Source of the DNA: Nageia nagi
Lineage: Eukaryota; Plantae; Pinophyta
Direction of reading: 5' to 3'
Assembly (NCBI GenBank): GCA_050084985.1
Contig: JBITNC010000001.1
Span: 173,972,001 to 174,036,000, forward strand
DNA length: 64,000 bases
The notes beneath the pieces were generated by a model. That model had not been told where the DNA came from, did not search any database, and saw nothing but the letters and a program-made list of their open reading frames with translations. The translations under genes were made by a program, and so were the position numbers. Within the stretch, counting starts at the first letter, position 1, and each line of letters begins with the position of its first letter. This document shows, one piece after another, positions 38,866 through 49,609 of this stretch.

Positions 38866-40018
38866 TTACAATACCTCTTTTACAACCTCTTCATGTGTGA
38901 TCATTGTTAATTTGTTGTGGCAATTCTTTGGAGGCATTATCTCTTTCTCCTTCACCTCCTGGAAATTTACACTACTCCATGGATGTGATCTACATGTGGA
39001 AAATATATACCAATACCTCTTAAAGTCAATCTCAAATCAATCAAGAATTTAAAACATTCCAATGCCCTTTTTATAGCCTTTGACTATGTGAACGTTATTT
39101 CTTGTAACGATTGTTCAACTCATCATTTCTTCAAGGATGTATCTTAAATAAGAAAAAGATATATCAAATAAGTGACCAATAACACATAGTCAATTCTATG
39201 AAATGACTAATAATAAATAACAATGCCCATATTTTATGCTTATGAACTTTCTAAAGGATGAGCCTTTTTTATCATATCTCCATATGAAAGGATGACCTTA
39301 ACCTAGAAAGAAGGAATATGCCATGTAACCGTGGTCACAAATGGAACATTGTATAAGTAATAAGGTAATACCAATGTAAGTTTATAAAATCTTGTTTAGT
39401 GGTCACAATACCTCTTTTACAACCTCTTCACGTGTGATCATTATTTGTTGTGGCAATTATCTAGAGACATCATCTCCTTCTCCTTCACCTCCTTAAACTT
39501 CACACTACTCCATGGATGTGCTCTACGTATGGAAAAGAGAGATTAATATCTCTTAAACTCAAACTCAAAGTAATCAAGAATTTAAAATATTTCAGTACCC
39601 CTTTTTCAACCTTTGACCATGTGATTAATATTTCTTCTAGTGATCCTTGAAGTTGTCAATTCTCCAAGGATGTGTCTTAGATATGCAAAAGATAGATCAA
39701 AGAAGGGAACAATAAGAGTCAATAAAATACAACCAAATCTATGAAATGGCTAATAATACCATATATATGAAGGAAAATAATGATGCCCATATTCTAGGCT
39801 TATGAACTTTCTAAAATGTCATCCTTTTTATCATAGCTTCATATGAAAGCATGATCCTAACCTGTAAAGAAAGAAAGAAAGAAAATGCCATGTAACTAAA
39901 GTCACAAATGGAATATAGAATAAGGCGATACCAATATAAAATTATAACACCATGTTAATGGTCACAATACCTCTATATATGTGATCATTGTTTGTTGTGG
40001 CAATTCTCTAGAGGCATT
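38861..40018. repeat. About 540-560 bp tandem repeat: two full units plus a third split by copia D (continues 48174 to about 48295); partial unit near 38205-38470
   Basis: Units begin tggt(t/c)acaatacctc near 38863, 39400, 39959; ttcacactactccatggatgtg-like strings recur near 38292, 38968, 39499, 48206. Confidence 0.85.
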
Positions 40019-40317
40019 TATTATAACCCTAACCTTACCCTTGGGTTAAAGGGAGGTTAGGGAGGTGCTCTCAAGCTATAAATAGAGGGCCTCTCCTCTT
40101 GTAACAGAACTAAGTTTTTGGAGTAAGATTACTCTACTAGTTGTGTAGGAAAGGAAGAGAATAGTTGTAAGAGGGGCATACTTGAGAATTGAGATACTAG
40201 TTGTGGATGTACTCCCAAGGAGGGAGGAACCACATTATATGTGTGTTATCTTGTGTATGATTGAGTTTTCTAGTCTTGGTCCTTGAGGATTTGTTTAGAT
40301 CTAGCTTAAATCCTTCA
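40019..40317 (+). repeat. 5' LTR segment of D (TATA box, R/U5, ends ccttca); has no counterpart at the 3' end
   Basis: ctataaatag near 40076; CA end lies 3 nt before the PBS. Confidence 0.8.
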
Positions 40318-40320
40318 ATT

Positions 40321-40332
40321 TGGTATCAGAGC
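40321..40332 (+). promoter_or_regulatory. PBS of copia D (tRNA-iMet)
   Basis: tggtatcagagc, exact. Confidence 0.95.
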
Positions 40333-41057
40333 TTGGTGTGGAAGCTCTTCTTCTTGGTGTGGAAGCTTTTCTTTTGGTGTGGAAGCTACATCTTGGTGAT
40401 CCTTCTTCATTCCTCATCTTACACTCCATTGGTGAGGTAAATTCCAAGAGAAGGTATAAATTTCCTCCTCATTTGGTTATTTTATGGATTATTACATGAT
40501 GTTACTAACACATTACTTGCTATGTGTTAGTCCTTTTAAATTATGATTAACAAGTTGCAATTTTTTTTACTAATCCTCTATGTTATTTGCAATTTTTAAA
40601 TTGCTATAATTCTTTTAAAAAGGGTTAGTTTACAAAAATTGTAATTTTTTACATATTATATTGGAATTAAATGTATGTGTTGGTTCAATTTATCACAACA
40701 TTTGATTAAATACCAATATATGATGAAAATTGCAATATATACTAACATTCTTTATGTTATTACTATTTGCTTAAAAATAGTAATATATTATTGTGAAATT
40801 TCTCATATATATACTACCATTTTTTATGTTAGTGGTATTTTTATTGGTGAGGCATGAACATTTACAAAAATGAGAGGAGGATAATTTTTTTTTAGTCCTA
40901 CTACAAAATTGTTTTTGAGAAAGGGCACCATAATATATATATATATATATATATATATTTTAAATTTGTTTAAAATATAATCAAATAAAAATCCTTTCAA
41001 TTGCAAATAAATTACACCATACAAAAATTATTAATTTGGGGGGGGTCAAGAAAAATA

Positions 41058-41601
41058 GCGCACGCCCTGTTTGACACAATGCCAAATGTGGAAACGTAGG
41101 AAAGGGCCTGTGAATTGTTTGACAAAATGCCTCCTCACGATGCCGTCTCACAGGTTATGCACCAAATGAATGTGTTGAAAGGAACTATGGTCTGTTTGAC
41201 AAAATGCCTCACTGTAGTCTTCTGGCCTCCTCCACATCCTGCAATGGTCGACGGATCTGCATAAACCAGATACGTTGCTAGGTCTATGAATCATTTGCAA
41301 CACTGCATAATCATAGGATATGCATCAAACGGATACATTGAACGGGTTCGTGAATCGTTTGCCACTATGCATGATGCAGACCAAGTTTCATGACATACAA
41401 TGATCGTAGGTAATGCACAAAACATAGAGAAAGGCTCCGAAGCTGGAAGGAACGAGCGAATGAGTGCAGACAACATTCCCTGGACTACGATGATCGTCAG
41501 ATAAAATGGAAGCATAGAGAAGGCATCCAATTATTTGACTTGTTTGCATGATGCAGACACCAGTTCATGGCCTGCAAATGATCGCAGGATATGCACAAAC
41601 C
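41058..41601 (+). pseudogene. Mosaic of PLS-PPR fragments inside the leader of copia D
   Basis: AHALFDTMP / AKCGNVGK / ACELFDKMPPHDAVS / GYAPNECVERNYGLFDKMP / IIGYASNGYIERVRESFATMHDADQVS*HTMIVGNAQN / WTTMIV / GSIEKA...LHDADTSSW / MIAGYAQ. Confidence 0.8.
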
Positions 41602-43045
41602 AGTTGTTTCATGCTTAAATCCTTTTTAACGTGCCCCTCCTCCCTTGTCACCCTACAGTCATGAATTGGATGGTCAACAGCCACCCCACGCGACTTACCG
41701 ACTCTGCCCACGCTTCTTCCGCCCTGACGGACTGCGTTGGCACACACCTTAACCACACGACCTCCTCACCGACTTTGGCTCCTGCCACCTCTGTCCAGCC
41801 TCTCAACCTCCACGCAGCTTACCTTGGCCACCTTCCCTATTTTTTTTCAACAATAGTTGTTGAGCCTTAATGTAGGGATTTGATTTTTTTTTGCCTTGGT
41901 CAAAATTCAACATTTAAGGGCTTTTCCCTAAGTTTTTTTTTTTAAGTAAACAAAGGCTATATTTACTTAAAAAGCCTACTTCAAAGCCCAATTATAGCAT
42001 CCAAATTTTTTTTGGGATATCACATTACTTAACAAAAAAAGGGAGGAACCATACTTAAACACAATTTTTTAGCATCCAAGTTTTAGCACTTTAAGTAAAA
42101 ATGGGGGGAATTTTTATAATTTTTTTACTTAAATCTTTATGGATCTTGCATGCTAAGTTTATAATGCATGCCTCTTAACCTTGTTAGGAATCAAGCATGC
42201 TTAGTACTTAAAATTTTAAGTTAAATAATGCATGATGCATGTTTATTACTTAATTTTAAGTCATGGAATAATACATGTTTAAGTTATGGATTAATGCTAA
42301 GTAGGACTTAGCCTTTGTAAAATTCATTATTTTTTAACTTGAGCAAAAATATGAAAAATGTAAAAGTCCTTTAGGGGTTAGTACAAAACCCATTGGACTC
42401 TTAAGGTTTCAAGTTTCGTGTGGATGAAGTATTTTTACTTTACTTTATATTTTTGCACAATTGCTTTATACTTGCAATACGCAAAATATTGAAAGTAACC
42501 CCTAAAATGAACACATTCACACGTATTCTTCCACAACATGACTTGTTTGGGGAGCCACGAGGTGAGGACAGGGCAGACTGGAGCCTTTTAGTCCAAAGAC
42601 CCAAGTGGTGGTAAGTCCGTCTTAATTGCCCCTAAGACCTTTGTTGGATTGGACATAACTCTATTAGGTGGACAGGCATGTGTGTAGTGATACCACATGT
42701 TCGCACGTCCATTCAAGGATTATCCTGATAACCTAGGAGGAAAACTGAAAACCTTAATCAAGATAATTAAAATGGCCAGTCCAAGATACATCGGATCCTT
42801 GGAAAATAGTTGGTACTTCTCCTTGTGAGAGTATATTACTGACCAAGGTGAACTGGTTGAGGACTGGTAGTACCTGGGCTCCACTCTGCGGGCATCCAGG
42901 TGAAGGCCTAATTCTATACAAGAAAATAACCTCAACTTTATCCTTCTACGGATCGTGGTTTATAAGTTTGCACATGTTTACTTATGTTTTATTTGTATAG
43001 ATGGTAAAATTTGCATTCTTATTGCATATTTACTTTTTTGTAGCA

Positions 43046-46000
43046 ATGGTTGAAACCTTCATACCCAAGCATATACTCGACGATTCCAACTTTGGAATAT
43101 GGGAACCTCGTATGAAAGCTGAGTTACAAGCAAGGAAGCTATGGCAGACAATTAATGAAGACTTGGTCGCTCCTACCGATGAGAAGGCTCTTGAAGTATA
43201 CAACTCAAAGAATGAGTTAGCAACTTCAATGATTTATCGTGCAGTTTCAGATGACGTCCTTCTCATGATCTCTTCTTCAACATCAGCAAAGGAAGCTTGG
43301 GATAGGCTGAAGAAAATTTACCTTGGGTCAAAATTTTCAAGGAGGTTCACCATTTTACAAAAGTTGTTGCAATATCGTCAAGGTGAAGATGAAAGTGCCT
43401 CTATCTACTTGAACAAAATCATTGACCTCAGGACACAACTGGTTGGTTGTGGGTGCAACTGGATCAATGATGAGTTCATGGTCTTCATCATTCTTCAAAG
43501 CCTTTGTACAAAGTTTAGTAACTTTGTCACAGTTATGGAAACAAGGCTCGATGATGAAGAAGATGTCATCTCTCTTGATAACCTCTCTAGACTCCTTCTG
43601 AAGCATGAGAAACTTTGAATAAGAAAATGTTGAACCTTTCTCCAAAGGATAATAGCATTGCTCTAGGAGCAACCAAAACTCCTTTCAAGAAGAAGTTCAA
43701 ACATTATAAATTCAAAGATAACAAGTCCTCATCTACCTTCAGGAAGTATGAGAAAAAGGGCAACAATAATGGCAACTTCAGGTAAAGGAATGACAAAGCT
43801 GGATCAAGCAATCCAACACCTCAGGAAAAGTTTGATGGAAATTGTAACTTTTGTGGCATCTTTGGGCACAAAGAGTATGATTGTTGTAAAAAGGAATTTG
43901 CTCAAAAAGGCAAGGGAAATGCAAATGTGAGAAATTTCAATAATAGAAAGAAGAACAAGCATGCTGCTACTGTTGCCTACTACTCAATGACTCAAACTGT
44001 TTCAAATGATTGGATTATTGATTTAGGATGCACTAATCACATGTGTTATGAAAAGGATAAGTTTGAAAATTTTCATAAGTACAAGAAAGATGCAGTTGTG
44101 ATAGGTGATAACATAGTCCTTGATGTTCAAGGAATAGGGAGTGTGAAGATTCATGGAAAGACTCTTGATAATGTCTTTTATGTACCTAAACTAAGGATGA
44201 ATCTCATCTCCGTAATTCAGATTACAAGGAAAGGATACTCATTTGAGTTTACCTCACACTCCTGGTGTGTTAAGAAAGGACTTGCCACCTTCATGAAAGG
44301 ATCAGTAAAGGATGACCTTTATATTGTGGATCAAGTTTCTTTAAAGATTTGTCTTGCTGCAAATGCTTGTTCAAAGGGTAATCTTTGGCATCAATGATTA
44401 GGGTACCTTAACCACAAGAGTATTCAAGCTATGAAAACTCAAGAACTTGTGGAAGGTTTACCTAATATTTCACCCATAATTGGTCTCTGTGAAAGGTGCA
44501 TTCTAGGAAAGATGAATAGGTAAAAGTTTGAAAAAGATAAGGCAACTCGGGCCACTCGTCCTCTTCAGCTTGTGCATTCAGATTTGATGGGTCCATTTTA
44601 GACTAAGTCTCTAGGGGGAGCTTCTTATGTTCTGACCTTCATTGATGACTTCAGTAGGATGACATTTGGTTATCTACTTGAGCACAAGGATCAAACTTTT
44701 GACAGGTTTAAAGACTTCAAAGCTCTTGTTGAAAATCAAACTGATTTTAAGATCAAAATGCTGAGATCTGATAATGGGGGTGAGTATAATAGCAATGAGT
44801 TTAATGACTATTGTGTTAAACATGGGATCAAACGGCAATTCACAATCCCTTACACCCCTCAGCAAAATGGAGTTGCTGAAAGGAAGAATCGCACCATTAT
44901 GGAAATGGCAAGATGCATGTTGGGTAACCTTCCTAGTTTCTTATGGGGAGAAGCGGTTCACACTGCTATTCACACCCTAAATAGGTGTCCTACTAAGGTA
45001 GTTGAAGGTAAAACTTCGTATGAAGCATGGACAGGAAAGAAACCTAACCTCTCACACTTTAGGGTCTTCGGTTGTGATGCATTTGCCTTCATTACCTCAG
45101 AGAAAAGAAAGAAGATGGATCAAAGATCAGAAAAATGCATCTTTGTGGGGTATGATAATCAGCATAGAGGTTACAGGCTCTACTCCTCATCCCATAACAT
45201 AGTCTTTATTTCTAGGGATGTCAAGTTCAATGAACTTCCTGAGGATACAACCTCTCATGCTGAGGTGTCTGATACAGATGGTTCTTCGCCAGCACCTAAC
45301 TGGTTGGATGATCATGTAGGGAAGTCACCACAAGAGAAAAATTCTCCAGCTCAGAGAATTACAAGAAGTATGACCTTGAATAACTCTTTATTTGCCAAAA
45401 TTGATAATATGAATGAGCCATCAACATTCAAAGAAGCTTCCAAGCAAGAGTGTTGGATGGAAGCTATGAAGTTGAGTATGAGGCGCTCATGAAAAATGAA
45501 ACTTGGGATTTGGTTCCTTATCCCAATGAGAAAAATATGATTGGAAATAAATGGATATACAAGGTCAAGTACAATTCTGATGGAAAAATTGAAAAATACA
45601 AAGTAAGGTTAGTGGCCAAAGGATTCGCTCAAAAAAATGGTATTGATTATGAGGAAACCTTTGCTCCTGTGGCCAAGATGCCTACTGTCAGGATAATCCT
45701 TGCTTTTTCTACAGCTCAAGGATGGAAAGTTTTCCAACTTGATGTCAAGAGTGCATTTCTCAATGGTGGCTTGGATGTAGAAATCTACATGAATCAACCA
45801 GAAGGATTTATTCCAGAAGGAAAAGAGTCTCTTGTGTGCAAGCTAAAGAAGTCTTTGTATGGACTTAAACAAGCACCTAGAGCATGGTAAAAGAAAATTT
45901 TAGGATTCTTTACAGATATTGGTTTTTCCAAGTGCTTCTCTGACTCAGATCTCTATGTACTCAATCAAGGAAAAGACATGGTCTTAATTCTCCTTTATGT

Positions 46001-46893
46001 GGATGATCTTCTCATAACAGGCAATAATATTAAAATCATCCAAGAGTGCATATCCAAACTGAAGGCAACATTTGAAATGACTGATCTAGGTCTATTGCAT
46101 TACTATCTTGGGATGCAAGTATACCAACACAAAGATTGTATTTATCTTAGTCAATCTAAGTATATATCAGACATCTTGCAAAAGTTTGGAATGGAGGAGT
46201 GTAGATATGCTGCAATACCTATTTCTCCTGGAATCGCTGTATCTCTGAGCTCAGATTCTCAATTGGCTGATGCTACAGCTTATAGGCAATTGATTGGTAG
46301 TCTTCTGTATCTGACTATCTCTCGACCTGATATTGCCTTTGCAGTGAATCTGATGGCACGATTCATGCAAAAACCATATGTTGAGCACCTCAATGCTATT
46401 AAGCAAATCTTGAGGTATGTGGCAGGGACAAAGGATCTTGCTCTTAAGTATTCCAAAGTGCCCTCAATTGTTCTCTCTAGGTTCTTAGATTCTGATTATG
46501 GGGGGATAGAGATGACAGCAAATCAACCTCTGCATATGTGTTTAGCATTGGTTCAGGTGCTATCTCTTGGGCTTCCAAGAAGCTATTTGGCCGAGGCATC
46601 TTTTGAACAAAATTGGGTATAAGCAAAATGGCCCATCTCTTATTTCTTTAGACAATCAATCGGCTATCTCTTTGGCTAAGAATCCTGTGTTCCATCAGAG
46701 AACCAAACATGTGGAAATCTAAGCCCATTTTATCAGGGAGAAGGTTCTAGATGACATCATACACTTGGAGTATTATCCATCTACTGAAAACTCCACTAAT
46801 TTATTCACCAAGCCCCTTCCTGAAGCTCATTTTAGCAAGCTTAGGGATTCTCTCGGGTTGGTGAAGTTGCCCTCAAGGGGGAGTGAAGTCTAA
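43046..46893 (+). pseudogene. gag-pol of copia D (few stops and frameshifts, deletions in RNase H)
   Basis: gag LDDSNFGIWEPRMKAEL; CNFCGIFGHKEYDC; protease WIIDLGCTNHM; integrase LRSDNGGEY...PQQNGVAERKNRT; RT QLDVKSAFLNG, KSLYGLKQAPRAW, LYVDDLL; RNase H NPVFHQRTKHVE. Confidence 0.97.
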
Positions 46894-46959
46894 ACTTTTG
46901 TTAGTGATGACAACTTCACCTCTAAGAGGCTCTTTTGTTGTTGTATAGCATGTGTTGAT

Positions 46960-47425
46960 CATTTTATACCTCCATGGTAAGTTTGCTCTGCGTGACAAAC
47001 TTGTTGTACATTTTATACCTTCGTGGTAAGTTTGCTCTGCATGACAAACTTGTTGTACATTTTTATACCTCCGTGGTAAGTTTGCTCTACGTGATAAACT
47101 TGTTGTACATTTTATACCTTCGTGGTAAGTTTGCTCTGCATGACAAACTTGTTGTACATTTTTATACCTCCATGGTAAGTTTGCTCTGCGTGACAAACTT
47201 GTTGTACATTTTACACCTCCGTGGTAAGTTTGCTCTATGTGACAAACTTGTTGTACATTTTACACCTCCGTGGTAAGTTTGCTCTGTGTGACAAACTTAT
47301 TGTACAATTTTTTGAGCATATAATTTATATACCTCCGTGGTAAGTTCGCTTTGTGTGAGTAACTTATTGTACATTCTATACCTCCGTGGTGAGTTTGCTC
47401 TGCATGAGAAACTCGTTGTACAATT
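46960..47425 (+). repeat. 49/50-bp tandem array (about 9 units) in the 3' region of D
   Basis: Unit cattttatacctccgtggtaagtttgctctgcgtgacaaacttgttgta; the first units alternate as a 99-bp dimer. Confidence 0.95.
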
Positions 47426-47908
47426 TTTATGCTCTATTAATAATCAACACATGTCTATATACAACAGGTGACTATGAGTGATGGCTTGGCATCTCCGTGA
47501 TGACTTATAGTGCACCATTGATTAGTTATTTATAAGATGGCATTATTTGATTCTCTTATTTGAATATATGATGCATCTAACTGATTTTGTTCATGAGTTG
47601 CTTGTAGCATGTAGGATCTTCTTCAGAAATGCAGGTTACTCACCTTGTGAAAGCAAGCTCATGGAGACTCACATGTCAGCTTAAAGTTGATCAACTACTA
47701 TGTACAGTGAAACCAGTTGTGGTTAATGATTGTATTGTAAACCATTTTTTGTCAAATGGTAATGTAGTGAGTCTCATACTAGTTCTCAAAAAGATTCTCA
47801 AATATGTAAATGTTCTCATCTCCACTTGTATCTCTATGGAGGAGAACTCTCTCTTACTCTCTCTCTTCTCTCTTCTACGCTCTATCCCAATATTGCATTA
47901 AAGGGGAG

Positions 47909-48173
47909 TGTTAGAATTTGTAATGAAATATTGTGAATATCTAAAGTCCTTGTAAATTCAATTAATCACTTAAAGGATATGTAGATACCTTAAGGGATTA
48001 ATTGAATTCTTTATTATGTAGACTTTGACTTTACCAAGTGGTTAGTTGGTAGGTTAAAGTCTACATAATAAAGAATTCAATTAATCCCTTAAGGTATCTA
48101 CATATCCTTTAAGTGATTAATTGAATTTACAAGGAGTTTAGATATTCACAATATTTCATTACAAATTCTAACA
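47909..48173. repeat. 265-bp fold-back inverted repeat replacing the 3' LTR of D
   Basis: Arms 47909-48026 and 48056-48173 (118 bp, 1 mismatch), 29-bp spacer, preceded directly by PPT aaaggggag. Confidence 0.97.
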
Positions 48174-49609
48174 GCATTATCTCTTACCCCTTCATCTCCT
48201 TGAACTTCACACTACTCCATGGATGTGTTCAATGTATGGAAAATATAAATCAATACCTCTTAAACCCAAACTCAAAGAAATCAAGAATTTAAATATGAGT
48301 AGGAATTATCATTAGACTTAACTCAAGGAAAAAGAGAATTTAAAACTCATTATTTAGAATAATTTGTTCAACTACATGTTGTTGACATCAACTACCTCTT
48401 CATTTTGTTGAACTCTTCATTGCTTGAAGTGTGTGCCCAGCTCGTGCAAATCACATCTTTATGTCATATTTTCTCTTATACATTTTTGTGTTTATTTATT
48501 TTTTCCTCTCTTTCATAATCCTATATTATTATTTCAATGGTATTGATCGATTTATTTGATAGTTCTTTTTGTATCACACATTTTATTCATGACAACATAT
48601 TTTTACTAGTCTATATCATCTACTCTTACATTGCTTGTTAAGTACGTTAAATCTTCCCATTGTTTCAAATATTGATTTTTATTATACATTTGATTACCAT
48701 TTCATAATTTCAAAATAACTAGATAAATTATGATATTCTAACTTATTCTTATTCAATGTATAGCACTGCTAGTAATCGATATTTGAATATTCACCACAAG
48801 TAACAACCTTGCATATAAACATTAACCTCTTGACCACCCTATTAGCATGACATTCATCGAAAACACCTTATACATATTATTTGTCAACCAATAATAAGTA
48901 AACGAGATCAAATCATAATAAGTTACATGTATAGTAAATTTATATGACCAACAAGAAATGTAGAAATACCAACCATTACAATTTGAAGGTTGCCACTAAG
49001 AGCTAGACCATGGATAGTACGAATTGAAGGTTTCCTTCCACCTATGTATTATTAAGATTGGCTCCCTCTTGAATTTTAATTTGCAAAATTGAAACTTGGA
49101 AAACCTTAGGTGTAATATGAACTAAAATTGAAACTTGAAAACTATTTCAAATAGTATTATGATCATTTATGACCAAGAGTTTGTAACGATCTCTTCAAAG
49201 AAAAAAATTGATGTTGATCCTTTTTACATTTGAGCAATCTTACTAGTCATAGATATGTTGTTAATAACATGAATTTTCTTCTTTAAAGGATTGTAGAGAC
49301 TCCATGTAGGTTTCTTTCACATGCGATTGTGATAACAACTTGCATAGACTTGTATGCAAAATTAGTTTGCTTAAGAATAATTACCTTCTTGTTATCTATG
49401 ATTTTACATTTAATATTGTTTTATGATTCATAAACATGTGGGTTTCTTAATTTTCTTAAACATTTCAAATCCTACTATGACAATTTTTGACCAAGAATCT
49501 ATTTGATCTCTTTAAATAAGAAAAATAATTTTGATCCTCCATTTAAGCAATCTTACTTGTCCTGCAAAAGTTGCTAACGAGATCTTTGAAAATATTGTAT
49601 TAAGTCCTA

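Follow-up and report, generated by a model that had tools for sequence, protein, structure and literature searches.

A Ty1/copia insertion without direct long terminal repeats, consistent with a single reverse-transcription accident at a U3 hairpin

Introduction

How does a retrotransposon come to lie in a chromosome, framed by a target site duplication (TSD), when its two ends share no long terminal repeat (LTR)? The question is raised by an 8,155-base-pair (bp) insertion, a Ty1/copia element, at positions 40019-48173 of a 64,000-nucleotide (nt) stretch of Nageia nagi DNA (contig JBITNC010000001.1, positions 173,972,001-174,036,000 of the forward strand; this whole stretch is called the window here). 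A preliminary description, made from the letters of the window, had read it as a copia element inserted as a unit with a 5-bp duplication, with a 5'-truncated LTR on the left and, on the right, an end produced by fold-back priming or a template switch. It had weighed a one-off aberrant cDNA against a family that replicates without direct LTRs, and had proposed to check other copies for a direct LTR that unites the two end pieces. From comparison with contigs of related copies we arrive at a point that was not part of that description: both odd ends appear to be parts of one ordinary LTR, which breaks on either side of a natural hairpin in its U3 (unique 3') region. We assign a probability of about 0.6 to a one-off accident of reverse transcription, in which a single aberrant cDNA of a normal, high-copy Ty1/copia family was nevertheless integrated.

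Results

Structure of the right end

The preliminary description had the right end run for 118 bp past the polypurine tract (PPT), cross a 29-bp stem-loop and copy itself back. The palindrome itself was confirmed, and its extents were refined. A repeat search of the window returned inverted arms of 121 nt that are 98% complementary (47909-48029 and 48053-48173). Compared base by base, the truly copied part amounts to 113 nt (47909-48021 versus 48061-48173) with a single mismatch (47946/48136), and the middle is occupied by a 39-nt stem-loop, ACTTTGAC...GTTAAAGT with an inner ACCAA/TTGGT, which is a structure of its own and no copy. When folded as DNA this stem-loop reached -13.4 kcal/mol (z = -6.5), and none of 200 shuffled sequences was as stable. 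From left to right, the end is made up of the following parts:

47900-47908, + strand: polypurine tract AAAGGGGAG, adjoining U3 nt 1
47909-48021, + strand: U3 nt 1-113, the template arm; starts TGTTAGAA (TGTTAG...) and is covered by family contigs
48022-48060, + strand: natural U3 stem-loop, nt 114-152, 39 nt; the top strand has it in the natural orientation, and the fold-back pivots on its 3' base at 48060
48061-48173, + strand: U3 nt 113-1, copied in inverse orientation with one mismatch; its last letters, ...TTCTAACA-3' (...CTAACA), form a second U3-type terminus

The inverted copy begins at the base directly after the 3' end of the stem-loop and ends exactly at U3 nt 1. The arms and the pivot at the hairpin base support the earlier proposal of a fold-back or template-switch end with an inverted U3 terminus (CA-3'). 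The repeat search found no direct repeat between the two ends of this copy, in agreement with the earlier statement that the left piece is not repeated on the right, and neither end piece was found elsewhere in the 64-kb window.

The left end and the ordinary LTR of the family

The left end consists of a single piece:

40019-40317, + strand: 3' part of the LTR, about nt 166-464, 299 bp; ends ...CCTTCA; family contigs enter it at 40024

We aligned public contigs (Logan) from four runs of four studies to window positions 47430-48500. Thousands of contigs matched the element region in each of the four runs, from which it follows that the family is very abundant. Four contigs, two from run X1 and two from run X4, extend from the left arm across the stem-loop and as far as 48060; one of those from X4 is 162 nt long and has a depth of 907 on 47947-48060. 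Beyond 48060 these four contigs continue as TAGGT[A/G]ATACATT[T/A]AATGTAACCCTAACCT, and the last 12 letters of the overhang are those of window positions 40024-40035 (TAACCCTAACCT), which are unique in the 64-kb window and provide the sole match. Because the contigs cross from 48060 into 40024-40035, the normal LTR joins both end pieces: as judged by this sequence comparison, an ordinary LTR would be contiguous, about 464 bp long, and composed of 47909-48060 (nt 1-152), about 18 nt, and 40024-40317. The proposed check on other copies thus came out in favour of one direct LTR, and the earlier reading of the left end as a 5'-truncated LTR of 299 bp stands, since in the contigs of other copies it is preceded by U3. 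Furthermore, the contigs run through 48022-48060 in other copies, which makes the stem-loop a natural part of U3.

Placed on this LTR, the two break points of the insertion lie at nt 152 and at nt 162-171, that is, 10-19 nt apart and flanking the 3' base of the stem-loop. Two direct LTRs of the form TG...CA, as expected of Ty1/copia, are absent from this copy, whereas other copies of the family have one contiguous LTR; for this reason the element is to be regarded as an aberrant member and not as a different kind of element, and the locus appears to be an exception among the copies of its family. Among the contigs listed, with 47430-48500 as the query, none crosses the fold-back joint (48060/48061) or either flank joint.

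The contig alignments showed further features of the U3 region. Depth drops stepwise along 47909-48060, and six contigs of run X2 depart after 47935 into different AT-rich sequence, pointing to several subfamilies that have the PPT and the first ~25 nt of U3 in common and differ beyond. One X1 contig was placed from 48051 rightwards, and its loose letters before this position, TTACCAAAGGGTA, represent a variant, shorter loop; should it extend beyond 48060 on the + strand, it would show a second fold-back joint, in another copy. Metagenome contigs were also scanned for exact matches to the stem-loop and to the PPT/U3 joint, with 0 hits in each case. Of the 31-mers sampled from 42400-48400, 30-60% occurred in low-coverage runs under at least 10 organism labels and in air metagenomes, and because of this spread the family is taken to be abundant across a group of related, probably wind-pollinated plants.

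The outermost letters of the left end are less regular. The terminal five read TATTA in the window and TAATG in the family contigs, and the following 12 letters are identical. The minus-strand 3' end on the left is accordingly ...ATA-3' as the window has it and ...TTA-3' if the family contigs are followed, compared with ...AACA-3' at the right end. The left terminus had been suggested to be a cryptic attachment site, mutated from tgtta to tatta; this was not supported, as the family has TAATG, with A and not G as its second base and a minus-strand end of ...TA. Mutation after insertion may still account for the difference of the left minus-strand terminus from CA. Directly upstream of the left end the family LTR reads CATT, and the left GCATT ends in these four letters too, a coincidence with a chance of ~0.006 as calculated from base composition. 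Since CATT is common to target and LTR, and since the terminal five letters fit the family at 3 of 5 positions, the left joint can, by our reading of the sequence, be placed no better than 40015-40024. The 9-bp stem described earlier, CCCTAACCT/AGGTTAGGG, is present in the left end, and a TATA box, TATAAATA, lies at 40078-40087. The left end is unlikely to be the 5' end of the genomic RNA (the start of the R region), given that this only good TATA box sits 60 nt downstream of it.

The target site

The insertion interrupts a tandem repeat (38885-40018), which resumes at 48174-48293 and in which a unit of ~550 bp occurs about 2.7 times. The units are 74-87% alike and represent a local duplication, not a large satellite; in three of the four runs there was no contig depth over this repeat at 90% likeness. 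When the flanks were aligned with two of the units, the uninterrupted paralogous units were found to read ...GGAGGCATT, followed directly by ATCTCT..., with GCATT once. The two copies in the window are:

40014-40018, + strand: left copy of the target duplication GCATT; a single GCATT in the empty paralogous units; CATT at 40015-40018 equals family LTR nt 162-165
48174-48178, + strand: right copy of the duplicated GCATT; ATCTC comes next, the same as in the empty units

Because the neighbouring uninterrupted units have one GCATT, the 5-bp duplication, noted earlier on both sides of the element, is shown against an empty site. Its length is that of a Ty1/copia duplication, with the caveat that at the left joint the LTR, too, fits four of these five letters.

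A third GCATT occurs within the element at 47895-47899, directly before the PPT and 9 nt upstream of U3 nt 1. This is probably a chance coincidence, because continued snap-back copying predicts AATGC and not GCATT.

The arms of the palindrome differ at 1 of 113 positions, which suggests, with a very wide error, that a single-event insertion of this kind would be fairly recent. About two private differences from the family majority in 479 bp of the 3' untranslated region (47612, 47693) point in the same direction.

The body of the element

The Pfam domains lie on the + strand in the order Retrotran_gag_2 (E = 1e-26), Pol_BBD (1e-24), rve with SH3_retrovirus (2e-30), RVT_2 in two pieces (1e-48 and 4e-20) and an RNase H tail, which is the Ty1/copia order of gag, protease, integrase, reverse transcriptase and RNase H. 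A primer-binding site (PBS) next to the left LTR piece and a PPT next to the right one are likewise in place. The PBS reads TGGTATCAGAGC, which we take to be the classical copia PBS, complementary to the 3' end of plant initiator tRNA-Met (tRNA-iMet). Together with the empty-site comparison, these features bear out the view that a copia element was inserted here as a unit. The remaining parts are:

40321-40332, + strand: primer-binding site TGGTATCAGAGC, beginning 3 nt after ...CCTTCA, read directly
40333-43000, + strand: non-coding leader from PBS to gag, ~2.7 kb, with fragments like pentatricopeptide repeat (PPR) genes at ~41058-41601
43001-46890, + strand: gag-pol in at least six pieces, domains in copia order
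46953-47427, + strand: 49-bp tandem array in the 3' untranslated region

The gag-pol frame is disrupted by at least three frameshifts and three stops, and relatives of gag reach up to 84% identity. A 21-bp unit, CTTGGTGTGGAAGCTCTTCTT, is repeated 2.7 times at 40332-40387, its first base being the last base of the PBS (40332). Further into the leader, the segment 41058-41601 holds several degenerate PPR-gene-like pieces, in which LFDKMP motifs recur in two frames. The 49-bp array, situated after pol and before the PPT region, comprises ~9 units, and a small inverted repeat is present in each.

Discussion

A proposed origin of the two ends

In the reading that we favour, the late minus strand, while copying plus-strand strong-stop DNA for the left U3 after the second strand transfer, would have stopped at about nt 162-171, just 3' of the hairpin, and this stalled strand would have left an open intermediate resembling a 1-LTR circle. 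Circles with one LTR, which result from incomplete strand displacement, are a known side-product of retroviral reverse transcription (PMC13332604). The plus strand would have come round through the PPT, displacing its own 5' end; after nt 152 its 3' end (...GTTAAAGT) could have paired with ACTTTGAC (nt 114-121), either in the displaced plus-sense strand or in the same strand itself, and copying would then have proceeded from nt 113 to nt 1. Run-off at the plus-strand 5' end (as set by RNase H at the PPT/U3 border) would have left a blunt, U3-like duplex with a CA-3'OH, its top strand reading ...PPT-[1-152]-[c113-1]-CA-3' and paired to the plus-strand 5' end. Integrase would have joined this CA-3' end to the target. 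At a distance of 5 bp the stalled minus-strand end (...TA-3') would have been attached as well, whether by integrase, for which it is a poor substrate, or by host end-joining that made use of the CATT microhomology, and host repair would have removed the flaps. A single structure, the hairpin, would in this way account for both anomalies, for the exact end point and for the continuity of the top strand.

Several features of the right end bear on this proposal. As the inverted copy starts right after the 3' end of the stem, a plus-sense 3' end at nt 152 seems to have served as primer on a plus-sense template. RNase H, by cutting at the PPT/U3 border, sets the 5' end of plus-strand DNA, and the stop at U3 nt 1 points to this 5' end as the end of the template, since it is the only known discontinuity there; repair synthesis on sealed DNA, chromosomal or circular, would not be expected to end at this base. 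Furthermore, the asymmetric loop is found the natural way round on the strand that runs on from the PPT, which fits extension of a plus-sense DNA strand. Two other routes were considered and set aside. Self-priming of a truncated genomic RNA 3' end at the hairpin, combined with PPT-primed copying, predicts a flipped loop on the PPT strand, and the natural orientation is seen; a free-standing plus-strand hairpin would have no covalent link to the PPT, and a template switch by the continuous plus strand is preferred.

How the ends were joined is a separate question. According to two Ty1 studies, Ty1 integrase needs little beyond a terminal CA and generates 5-bp duplications (PMC2939329; PMC8487063). 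By analogy, the right end with its U3-type CA-3' would be an ideal integrase substrate. For the left joint, we regard concerted integration on a poor end and host joining (by CATT microhomology or with filler) after integrase had joined the right end as about equally likely. Capture without any integrase is less likely than either, because the duplication is exactly 5 bp, its G belongs to the target and not to the LTR, and the right end is exact.

A number of points weigh against the proposed accident. Between the minus-strand stop and the hairpin base there are 10-14 nt and not 1-3 nt, and it is we who infer the order of events in the model. The normal LTR was put together from four short contigs and 30-letter overhangs, and the locus is taken from the assembly, its flank being without depth in X1, X2 and X4. 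The left end is ...TA-3' and not CA-3', a terminus that, according to the same Ty1 studies, is used poorly or not at all by Ty1 integrase (PMC2939329; PMC8487063); its terminal five letters match the family at 3 of 5 positions; and with CATT present in both target and LTR, the left joint may not have been made by integrase.

Other explanations

If no integrase took part, a cDNA or 1-LTR circle broken at the U3 hairpin would have been end-joined into a chromosomal break, and GCATT would be no true TSD. The left end speaks for such a capture: it lacks a CA, its terminal TATTA, fitting the family at 3 of 5, resembles filler, and the last four letters of the supposed duplication equal family LTR nt 162-165. 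The content of the insertion, too, is a permuted unit (nt 166-464, the internal region, nt 1-152), as expected of a circle opened at the hairpin. However, at the fifth letter the window has G where the family has A, the duplication has exactly the copia length, and the right end, with its CA-3', falls exactly on U3 nt 1. On a sealed circle nothing would make repair synthesis stop at that point; a stop there requires the plus-strand 5' end of an unrepaired cDNA. We therefore consider integrase-free capture unlikely, if conceivable.

Rearrangement after insertion is somewhat harder still to credit. Here a normal two-LTR element would have lost nt 1-165 of its 5' LTR later on, and nt 153-464 of its 3' LTR would have been replaced by inverted nt 1-113. 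In its favour, plant LTR elements often lose parts through illegitimate recombination, the hairpin could plausibly be a fragile site, and the coding region has decayed. Yet this history calls for four or more break points, of which two must coincide exactly with borders between element and TSD while both GCATT copies are left intact, and for an inverted copy that terminates precisely at U3 nt 1.

Equally doubtful is a recurrent or heritable structure, in which the U3 hairpin repeatedly yields fold-back-ended copies or such copies propagate. The pivot is indeed a natural structure common to the family, and the X1 contig with a variant loop, placed from 48051 rightwards, could be read in this sense. 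But among the contigs listed none passes over 48060/48061, those that reach 48060 continue as a normal LTR, and RNA from a copy like this one would be without the R repeat needed for the first strand transfer. Of the two options that the preliminary description had kept side by side, we therefore favour the one-off aberrant cDNA; a family that replicates without direct LTRs is not supported by these contigs. It is similarly improbable that the hairpin acts as a built-in switch which repeatedly diverts an abundant copia lineage to integrating fold-back-ended products without direct LTRs. Were this so, the genome would be seeded with perfect hairpin loci matching the promoter region of the family, possible sources of silencing RNA.

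An assembly artefact, with the palindrome coming from the assembler or from a chimeric fold-back read, is very improbable: although all four runs are represented by Logan contigs and the flank has no depth in three of them, an artefact would not combine a pivot at the hairpin base, an end at U3 nt 1, a 5-bp duplication that matches and a target repeat that resumes correctly. Least credible of all, the 265-bp palindrome might be an independent miniature inverted-repeat transposable element (MITE) or foldback element beside a truncated copia, as its shortness and perfect terminal inverted repeats could suggest, but its left arm is family U3 directly after the PPT, followed in other copies by the remainder of the LTR; its flanks (GGGAG on the left, GCATT on the right) form no duplication; and there is no further copy in the window.

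What the locus may record

Chromosomal copies of LTR elements almost always show the correct end product. If it arose as we propose, this copy preserves an intermediate: it would record a minus-strand stop, a plus-strand template switch and run-off at the plus-strand origin, and it would imply that an aberrant molecule is able to reach the chromosome with a staggered target cut. It would thus offer a natural example of a second U3-type end replacing the U5 end at integration, and suggest that the last step of strand displacement can be upset by a small U3 hairpin. A further product of the insertion is a near-perfect 113-bp hairpin, with one mismatch, of promoter-proximal LTR sequence. As a single event the locus is a curiosity; it would carry more weight if the same joint recurred.

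Comparison with known systems

With other plant Ty1/copia elements this copy shares the domain order, the PBS TGGTATCAGAGC, a PPT directly before TG... and the 5-bp duplication, and the normal copies of its family have a contiguous LTR. It differs from them in being without direct LTRs: the left end lacks U3 nt 1-165, and the right end lacks R and U5 and carries an inverted U3 instead. Our literature searches found no described case of such an end structure; the searches were noisy and give no proof of absence.

A mechanistic parallel is snap-back self-priming, which is known from minus-strand strong-stop DNA of HIV-1 at the complement of the trans-activation response (TAR) element and from hairpin-primed second-strand cDNA synthesis. 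In these cases, as would apply here, a 3' end at the base of a stem-loop is extended on its own or a like-sense 5' part, giving an inverted duplication with run-off at the template 5' end. Here, by contrast, the strand would be plus-sense and the site lies in U3, and the product stayed linked to the element and integrated. Foldback elements and MITEs have a short, near-perfect palindrome with TG...CA tips, as does the right end of this copy; unlike theirs, the palindrome here is without a TSD of its own, is continuous with the PPT and has family U3 as its arm.

With regard to the use of non-canonical ends, the Ty1 studies report that a terminal CA-3' suffices for integrase, that an altered terminal dinucleotide abolished use in vivo, and that AA ends were used only at high Mn2+ in vitro (PMC2939329; PMC8487063). 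The right end of this copy supplies a U3-type CA of this kind, whereas its left end, ...TA-3', departs from the canonical form. Lastly, like retroviral 1-LTR circles (PMC13332604), this copy holds one LTR and the internal region, permuted inside the LTR in the manner of an unfinished strand displacement. Such circles are normally a dead end; this copy, in contrast, lies integrated in a chromosome with a target duplication.

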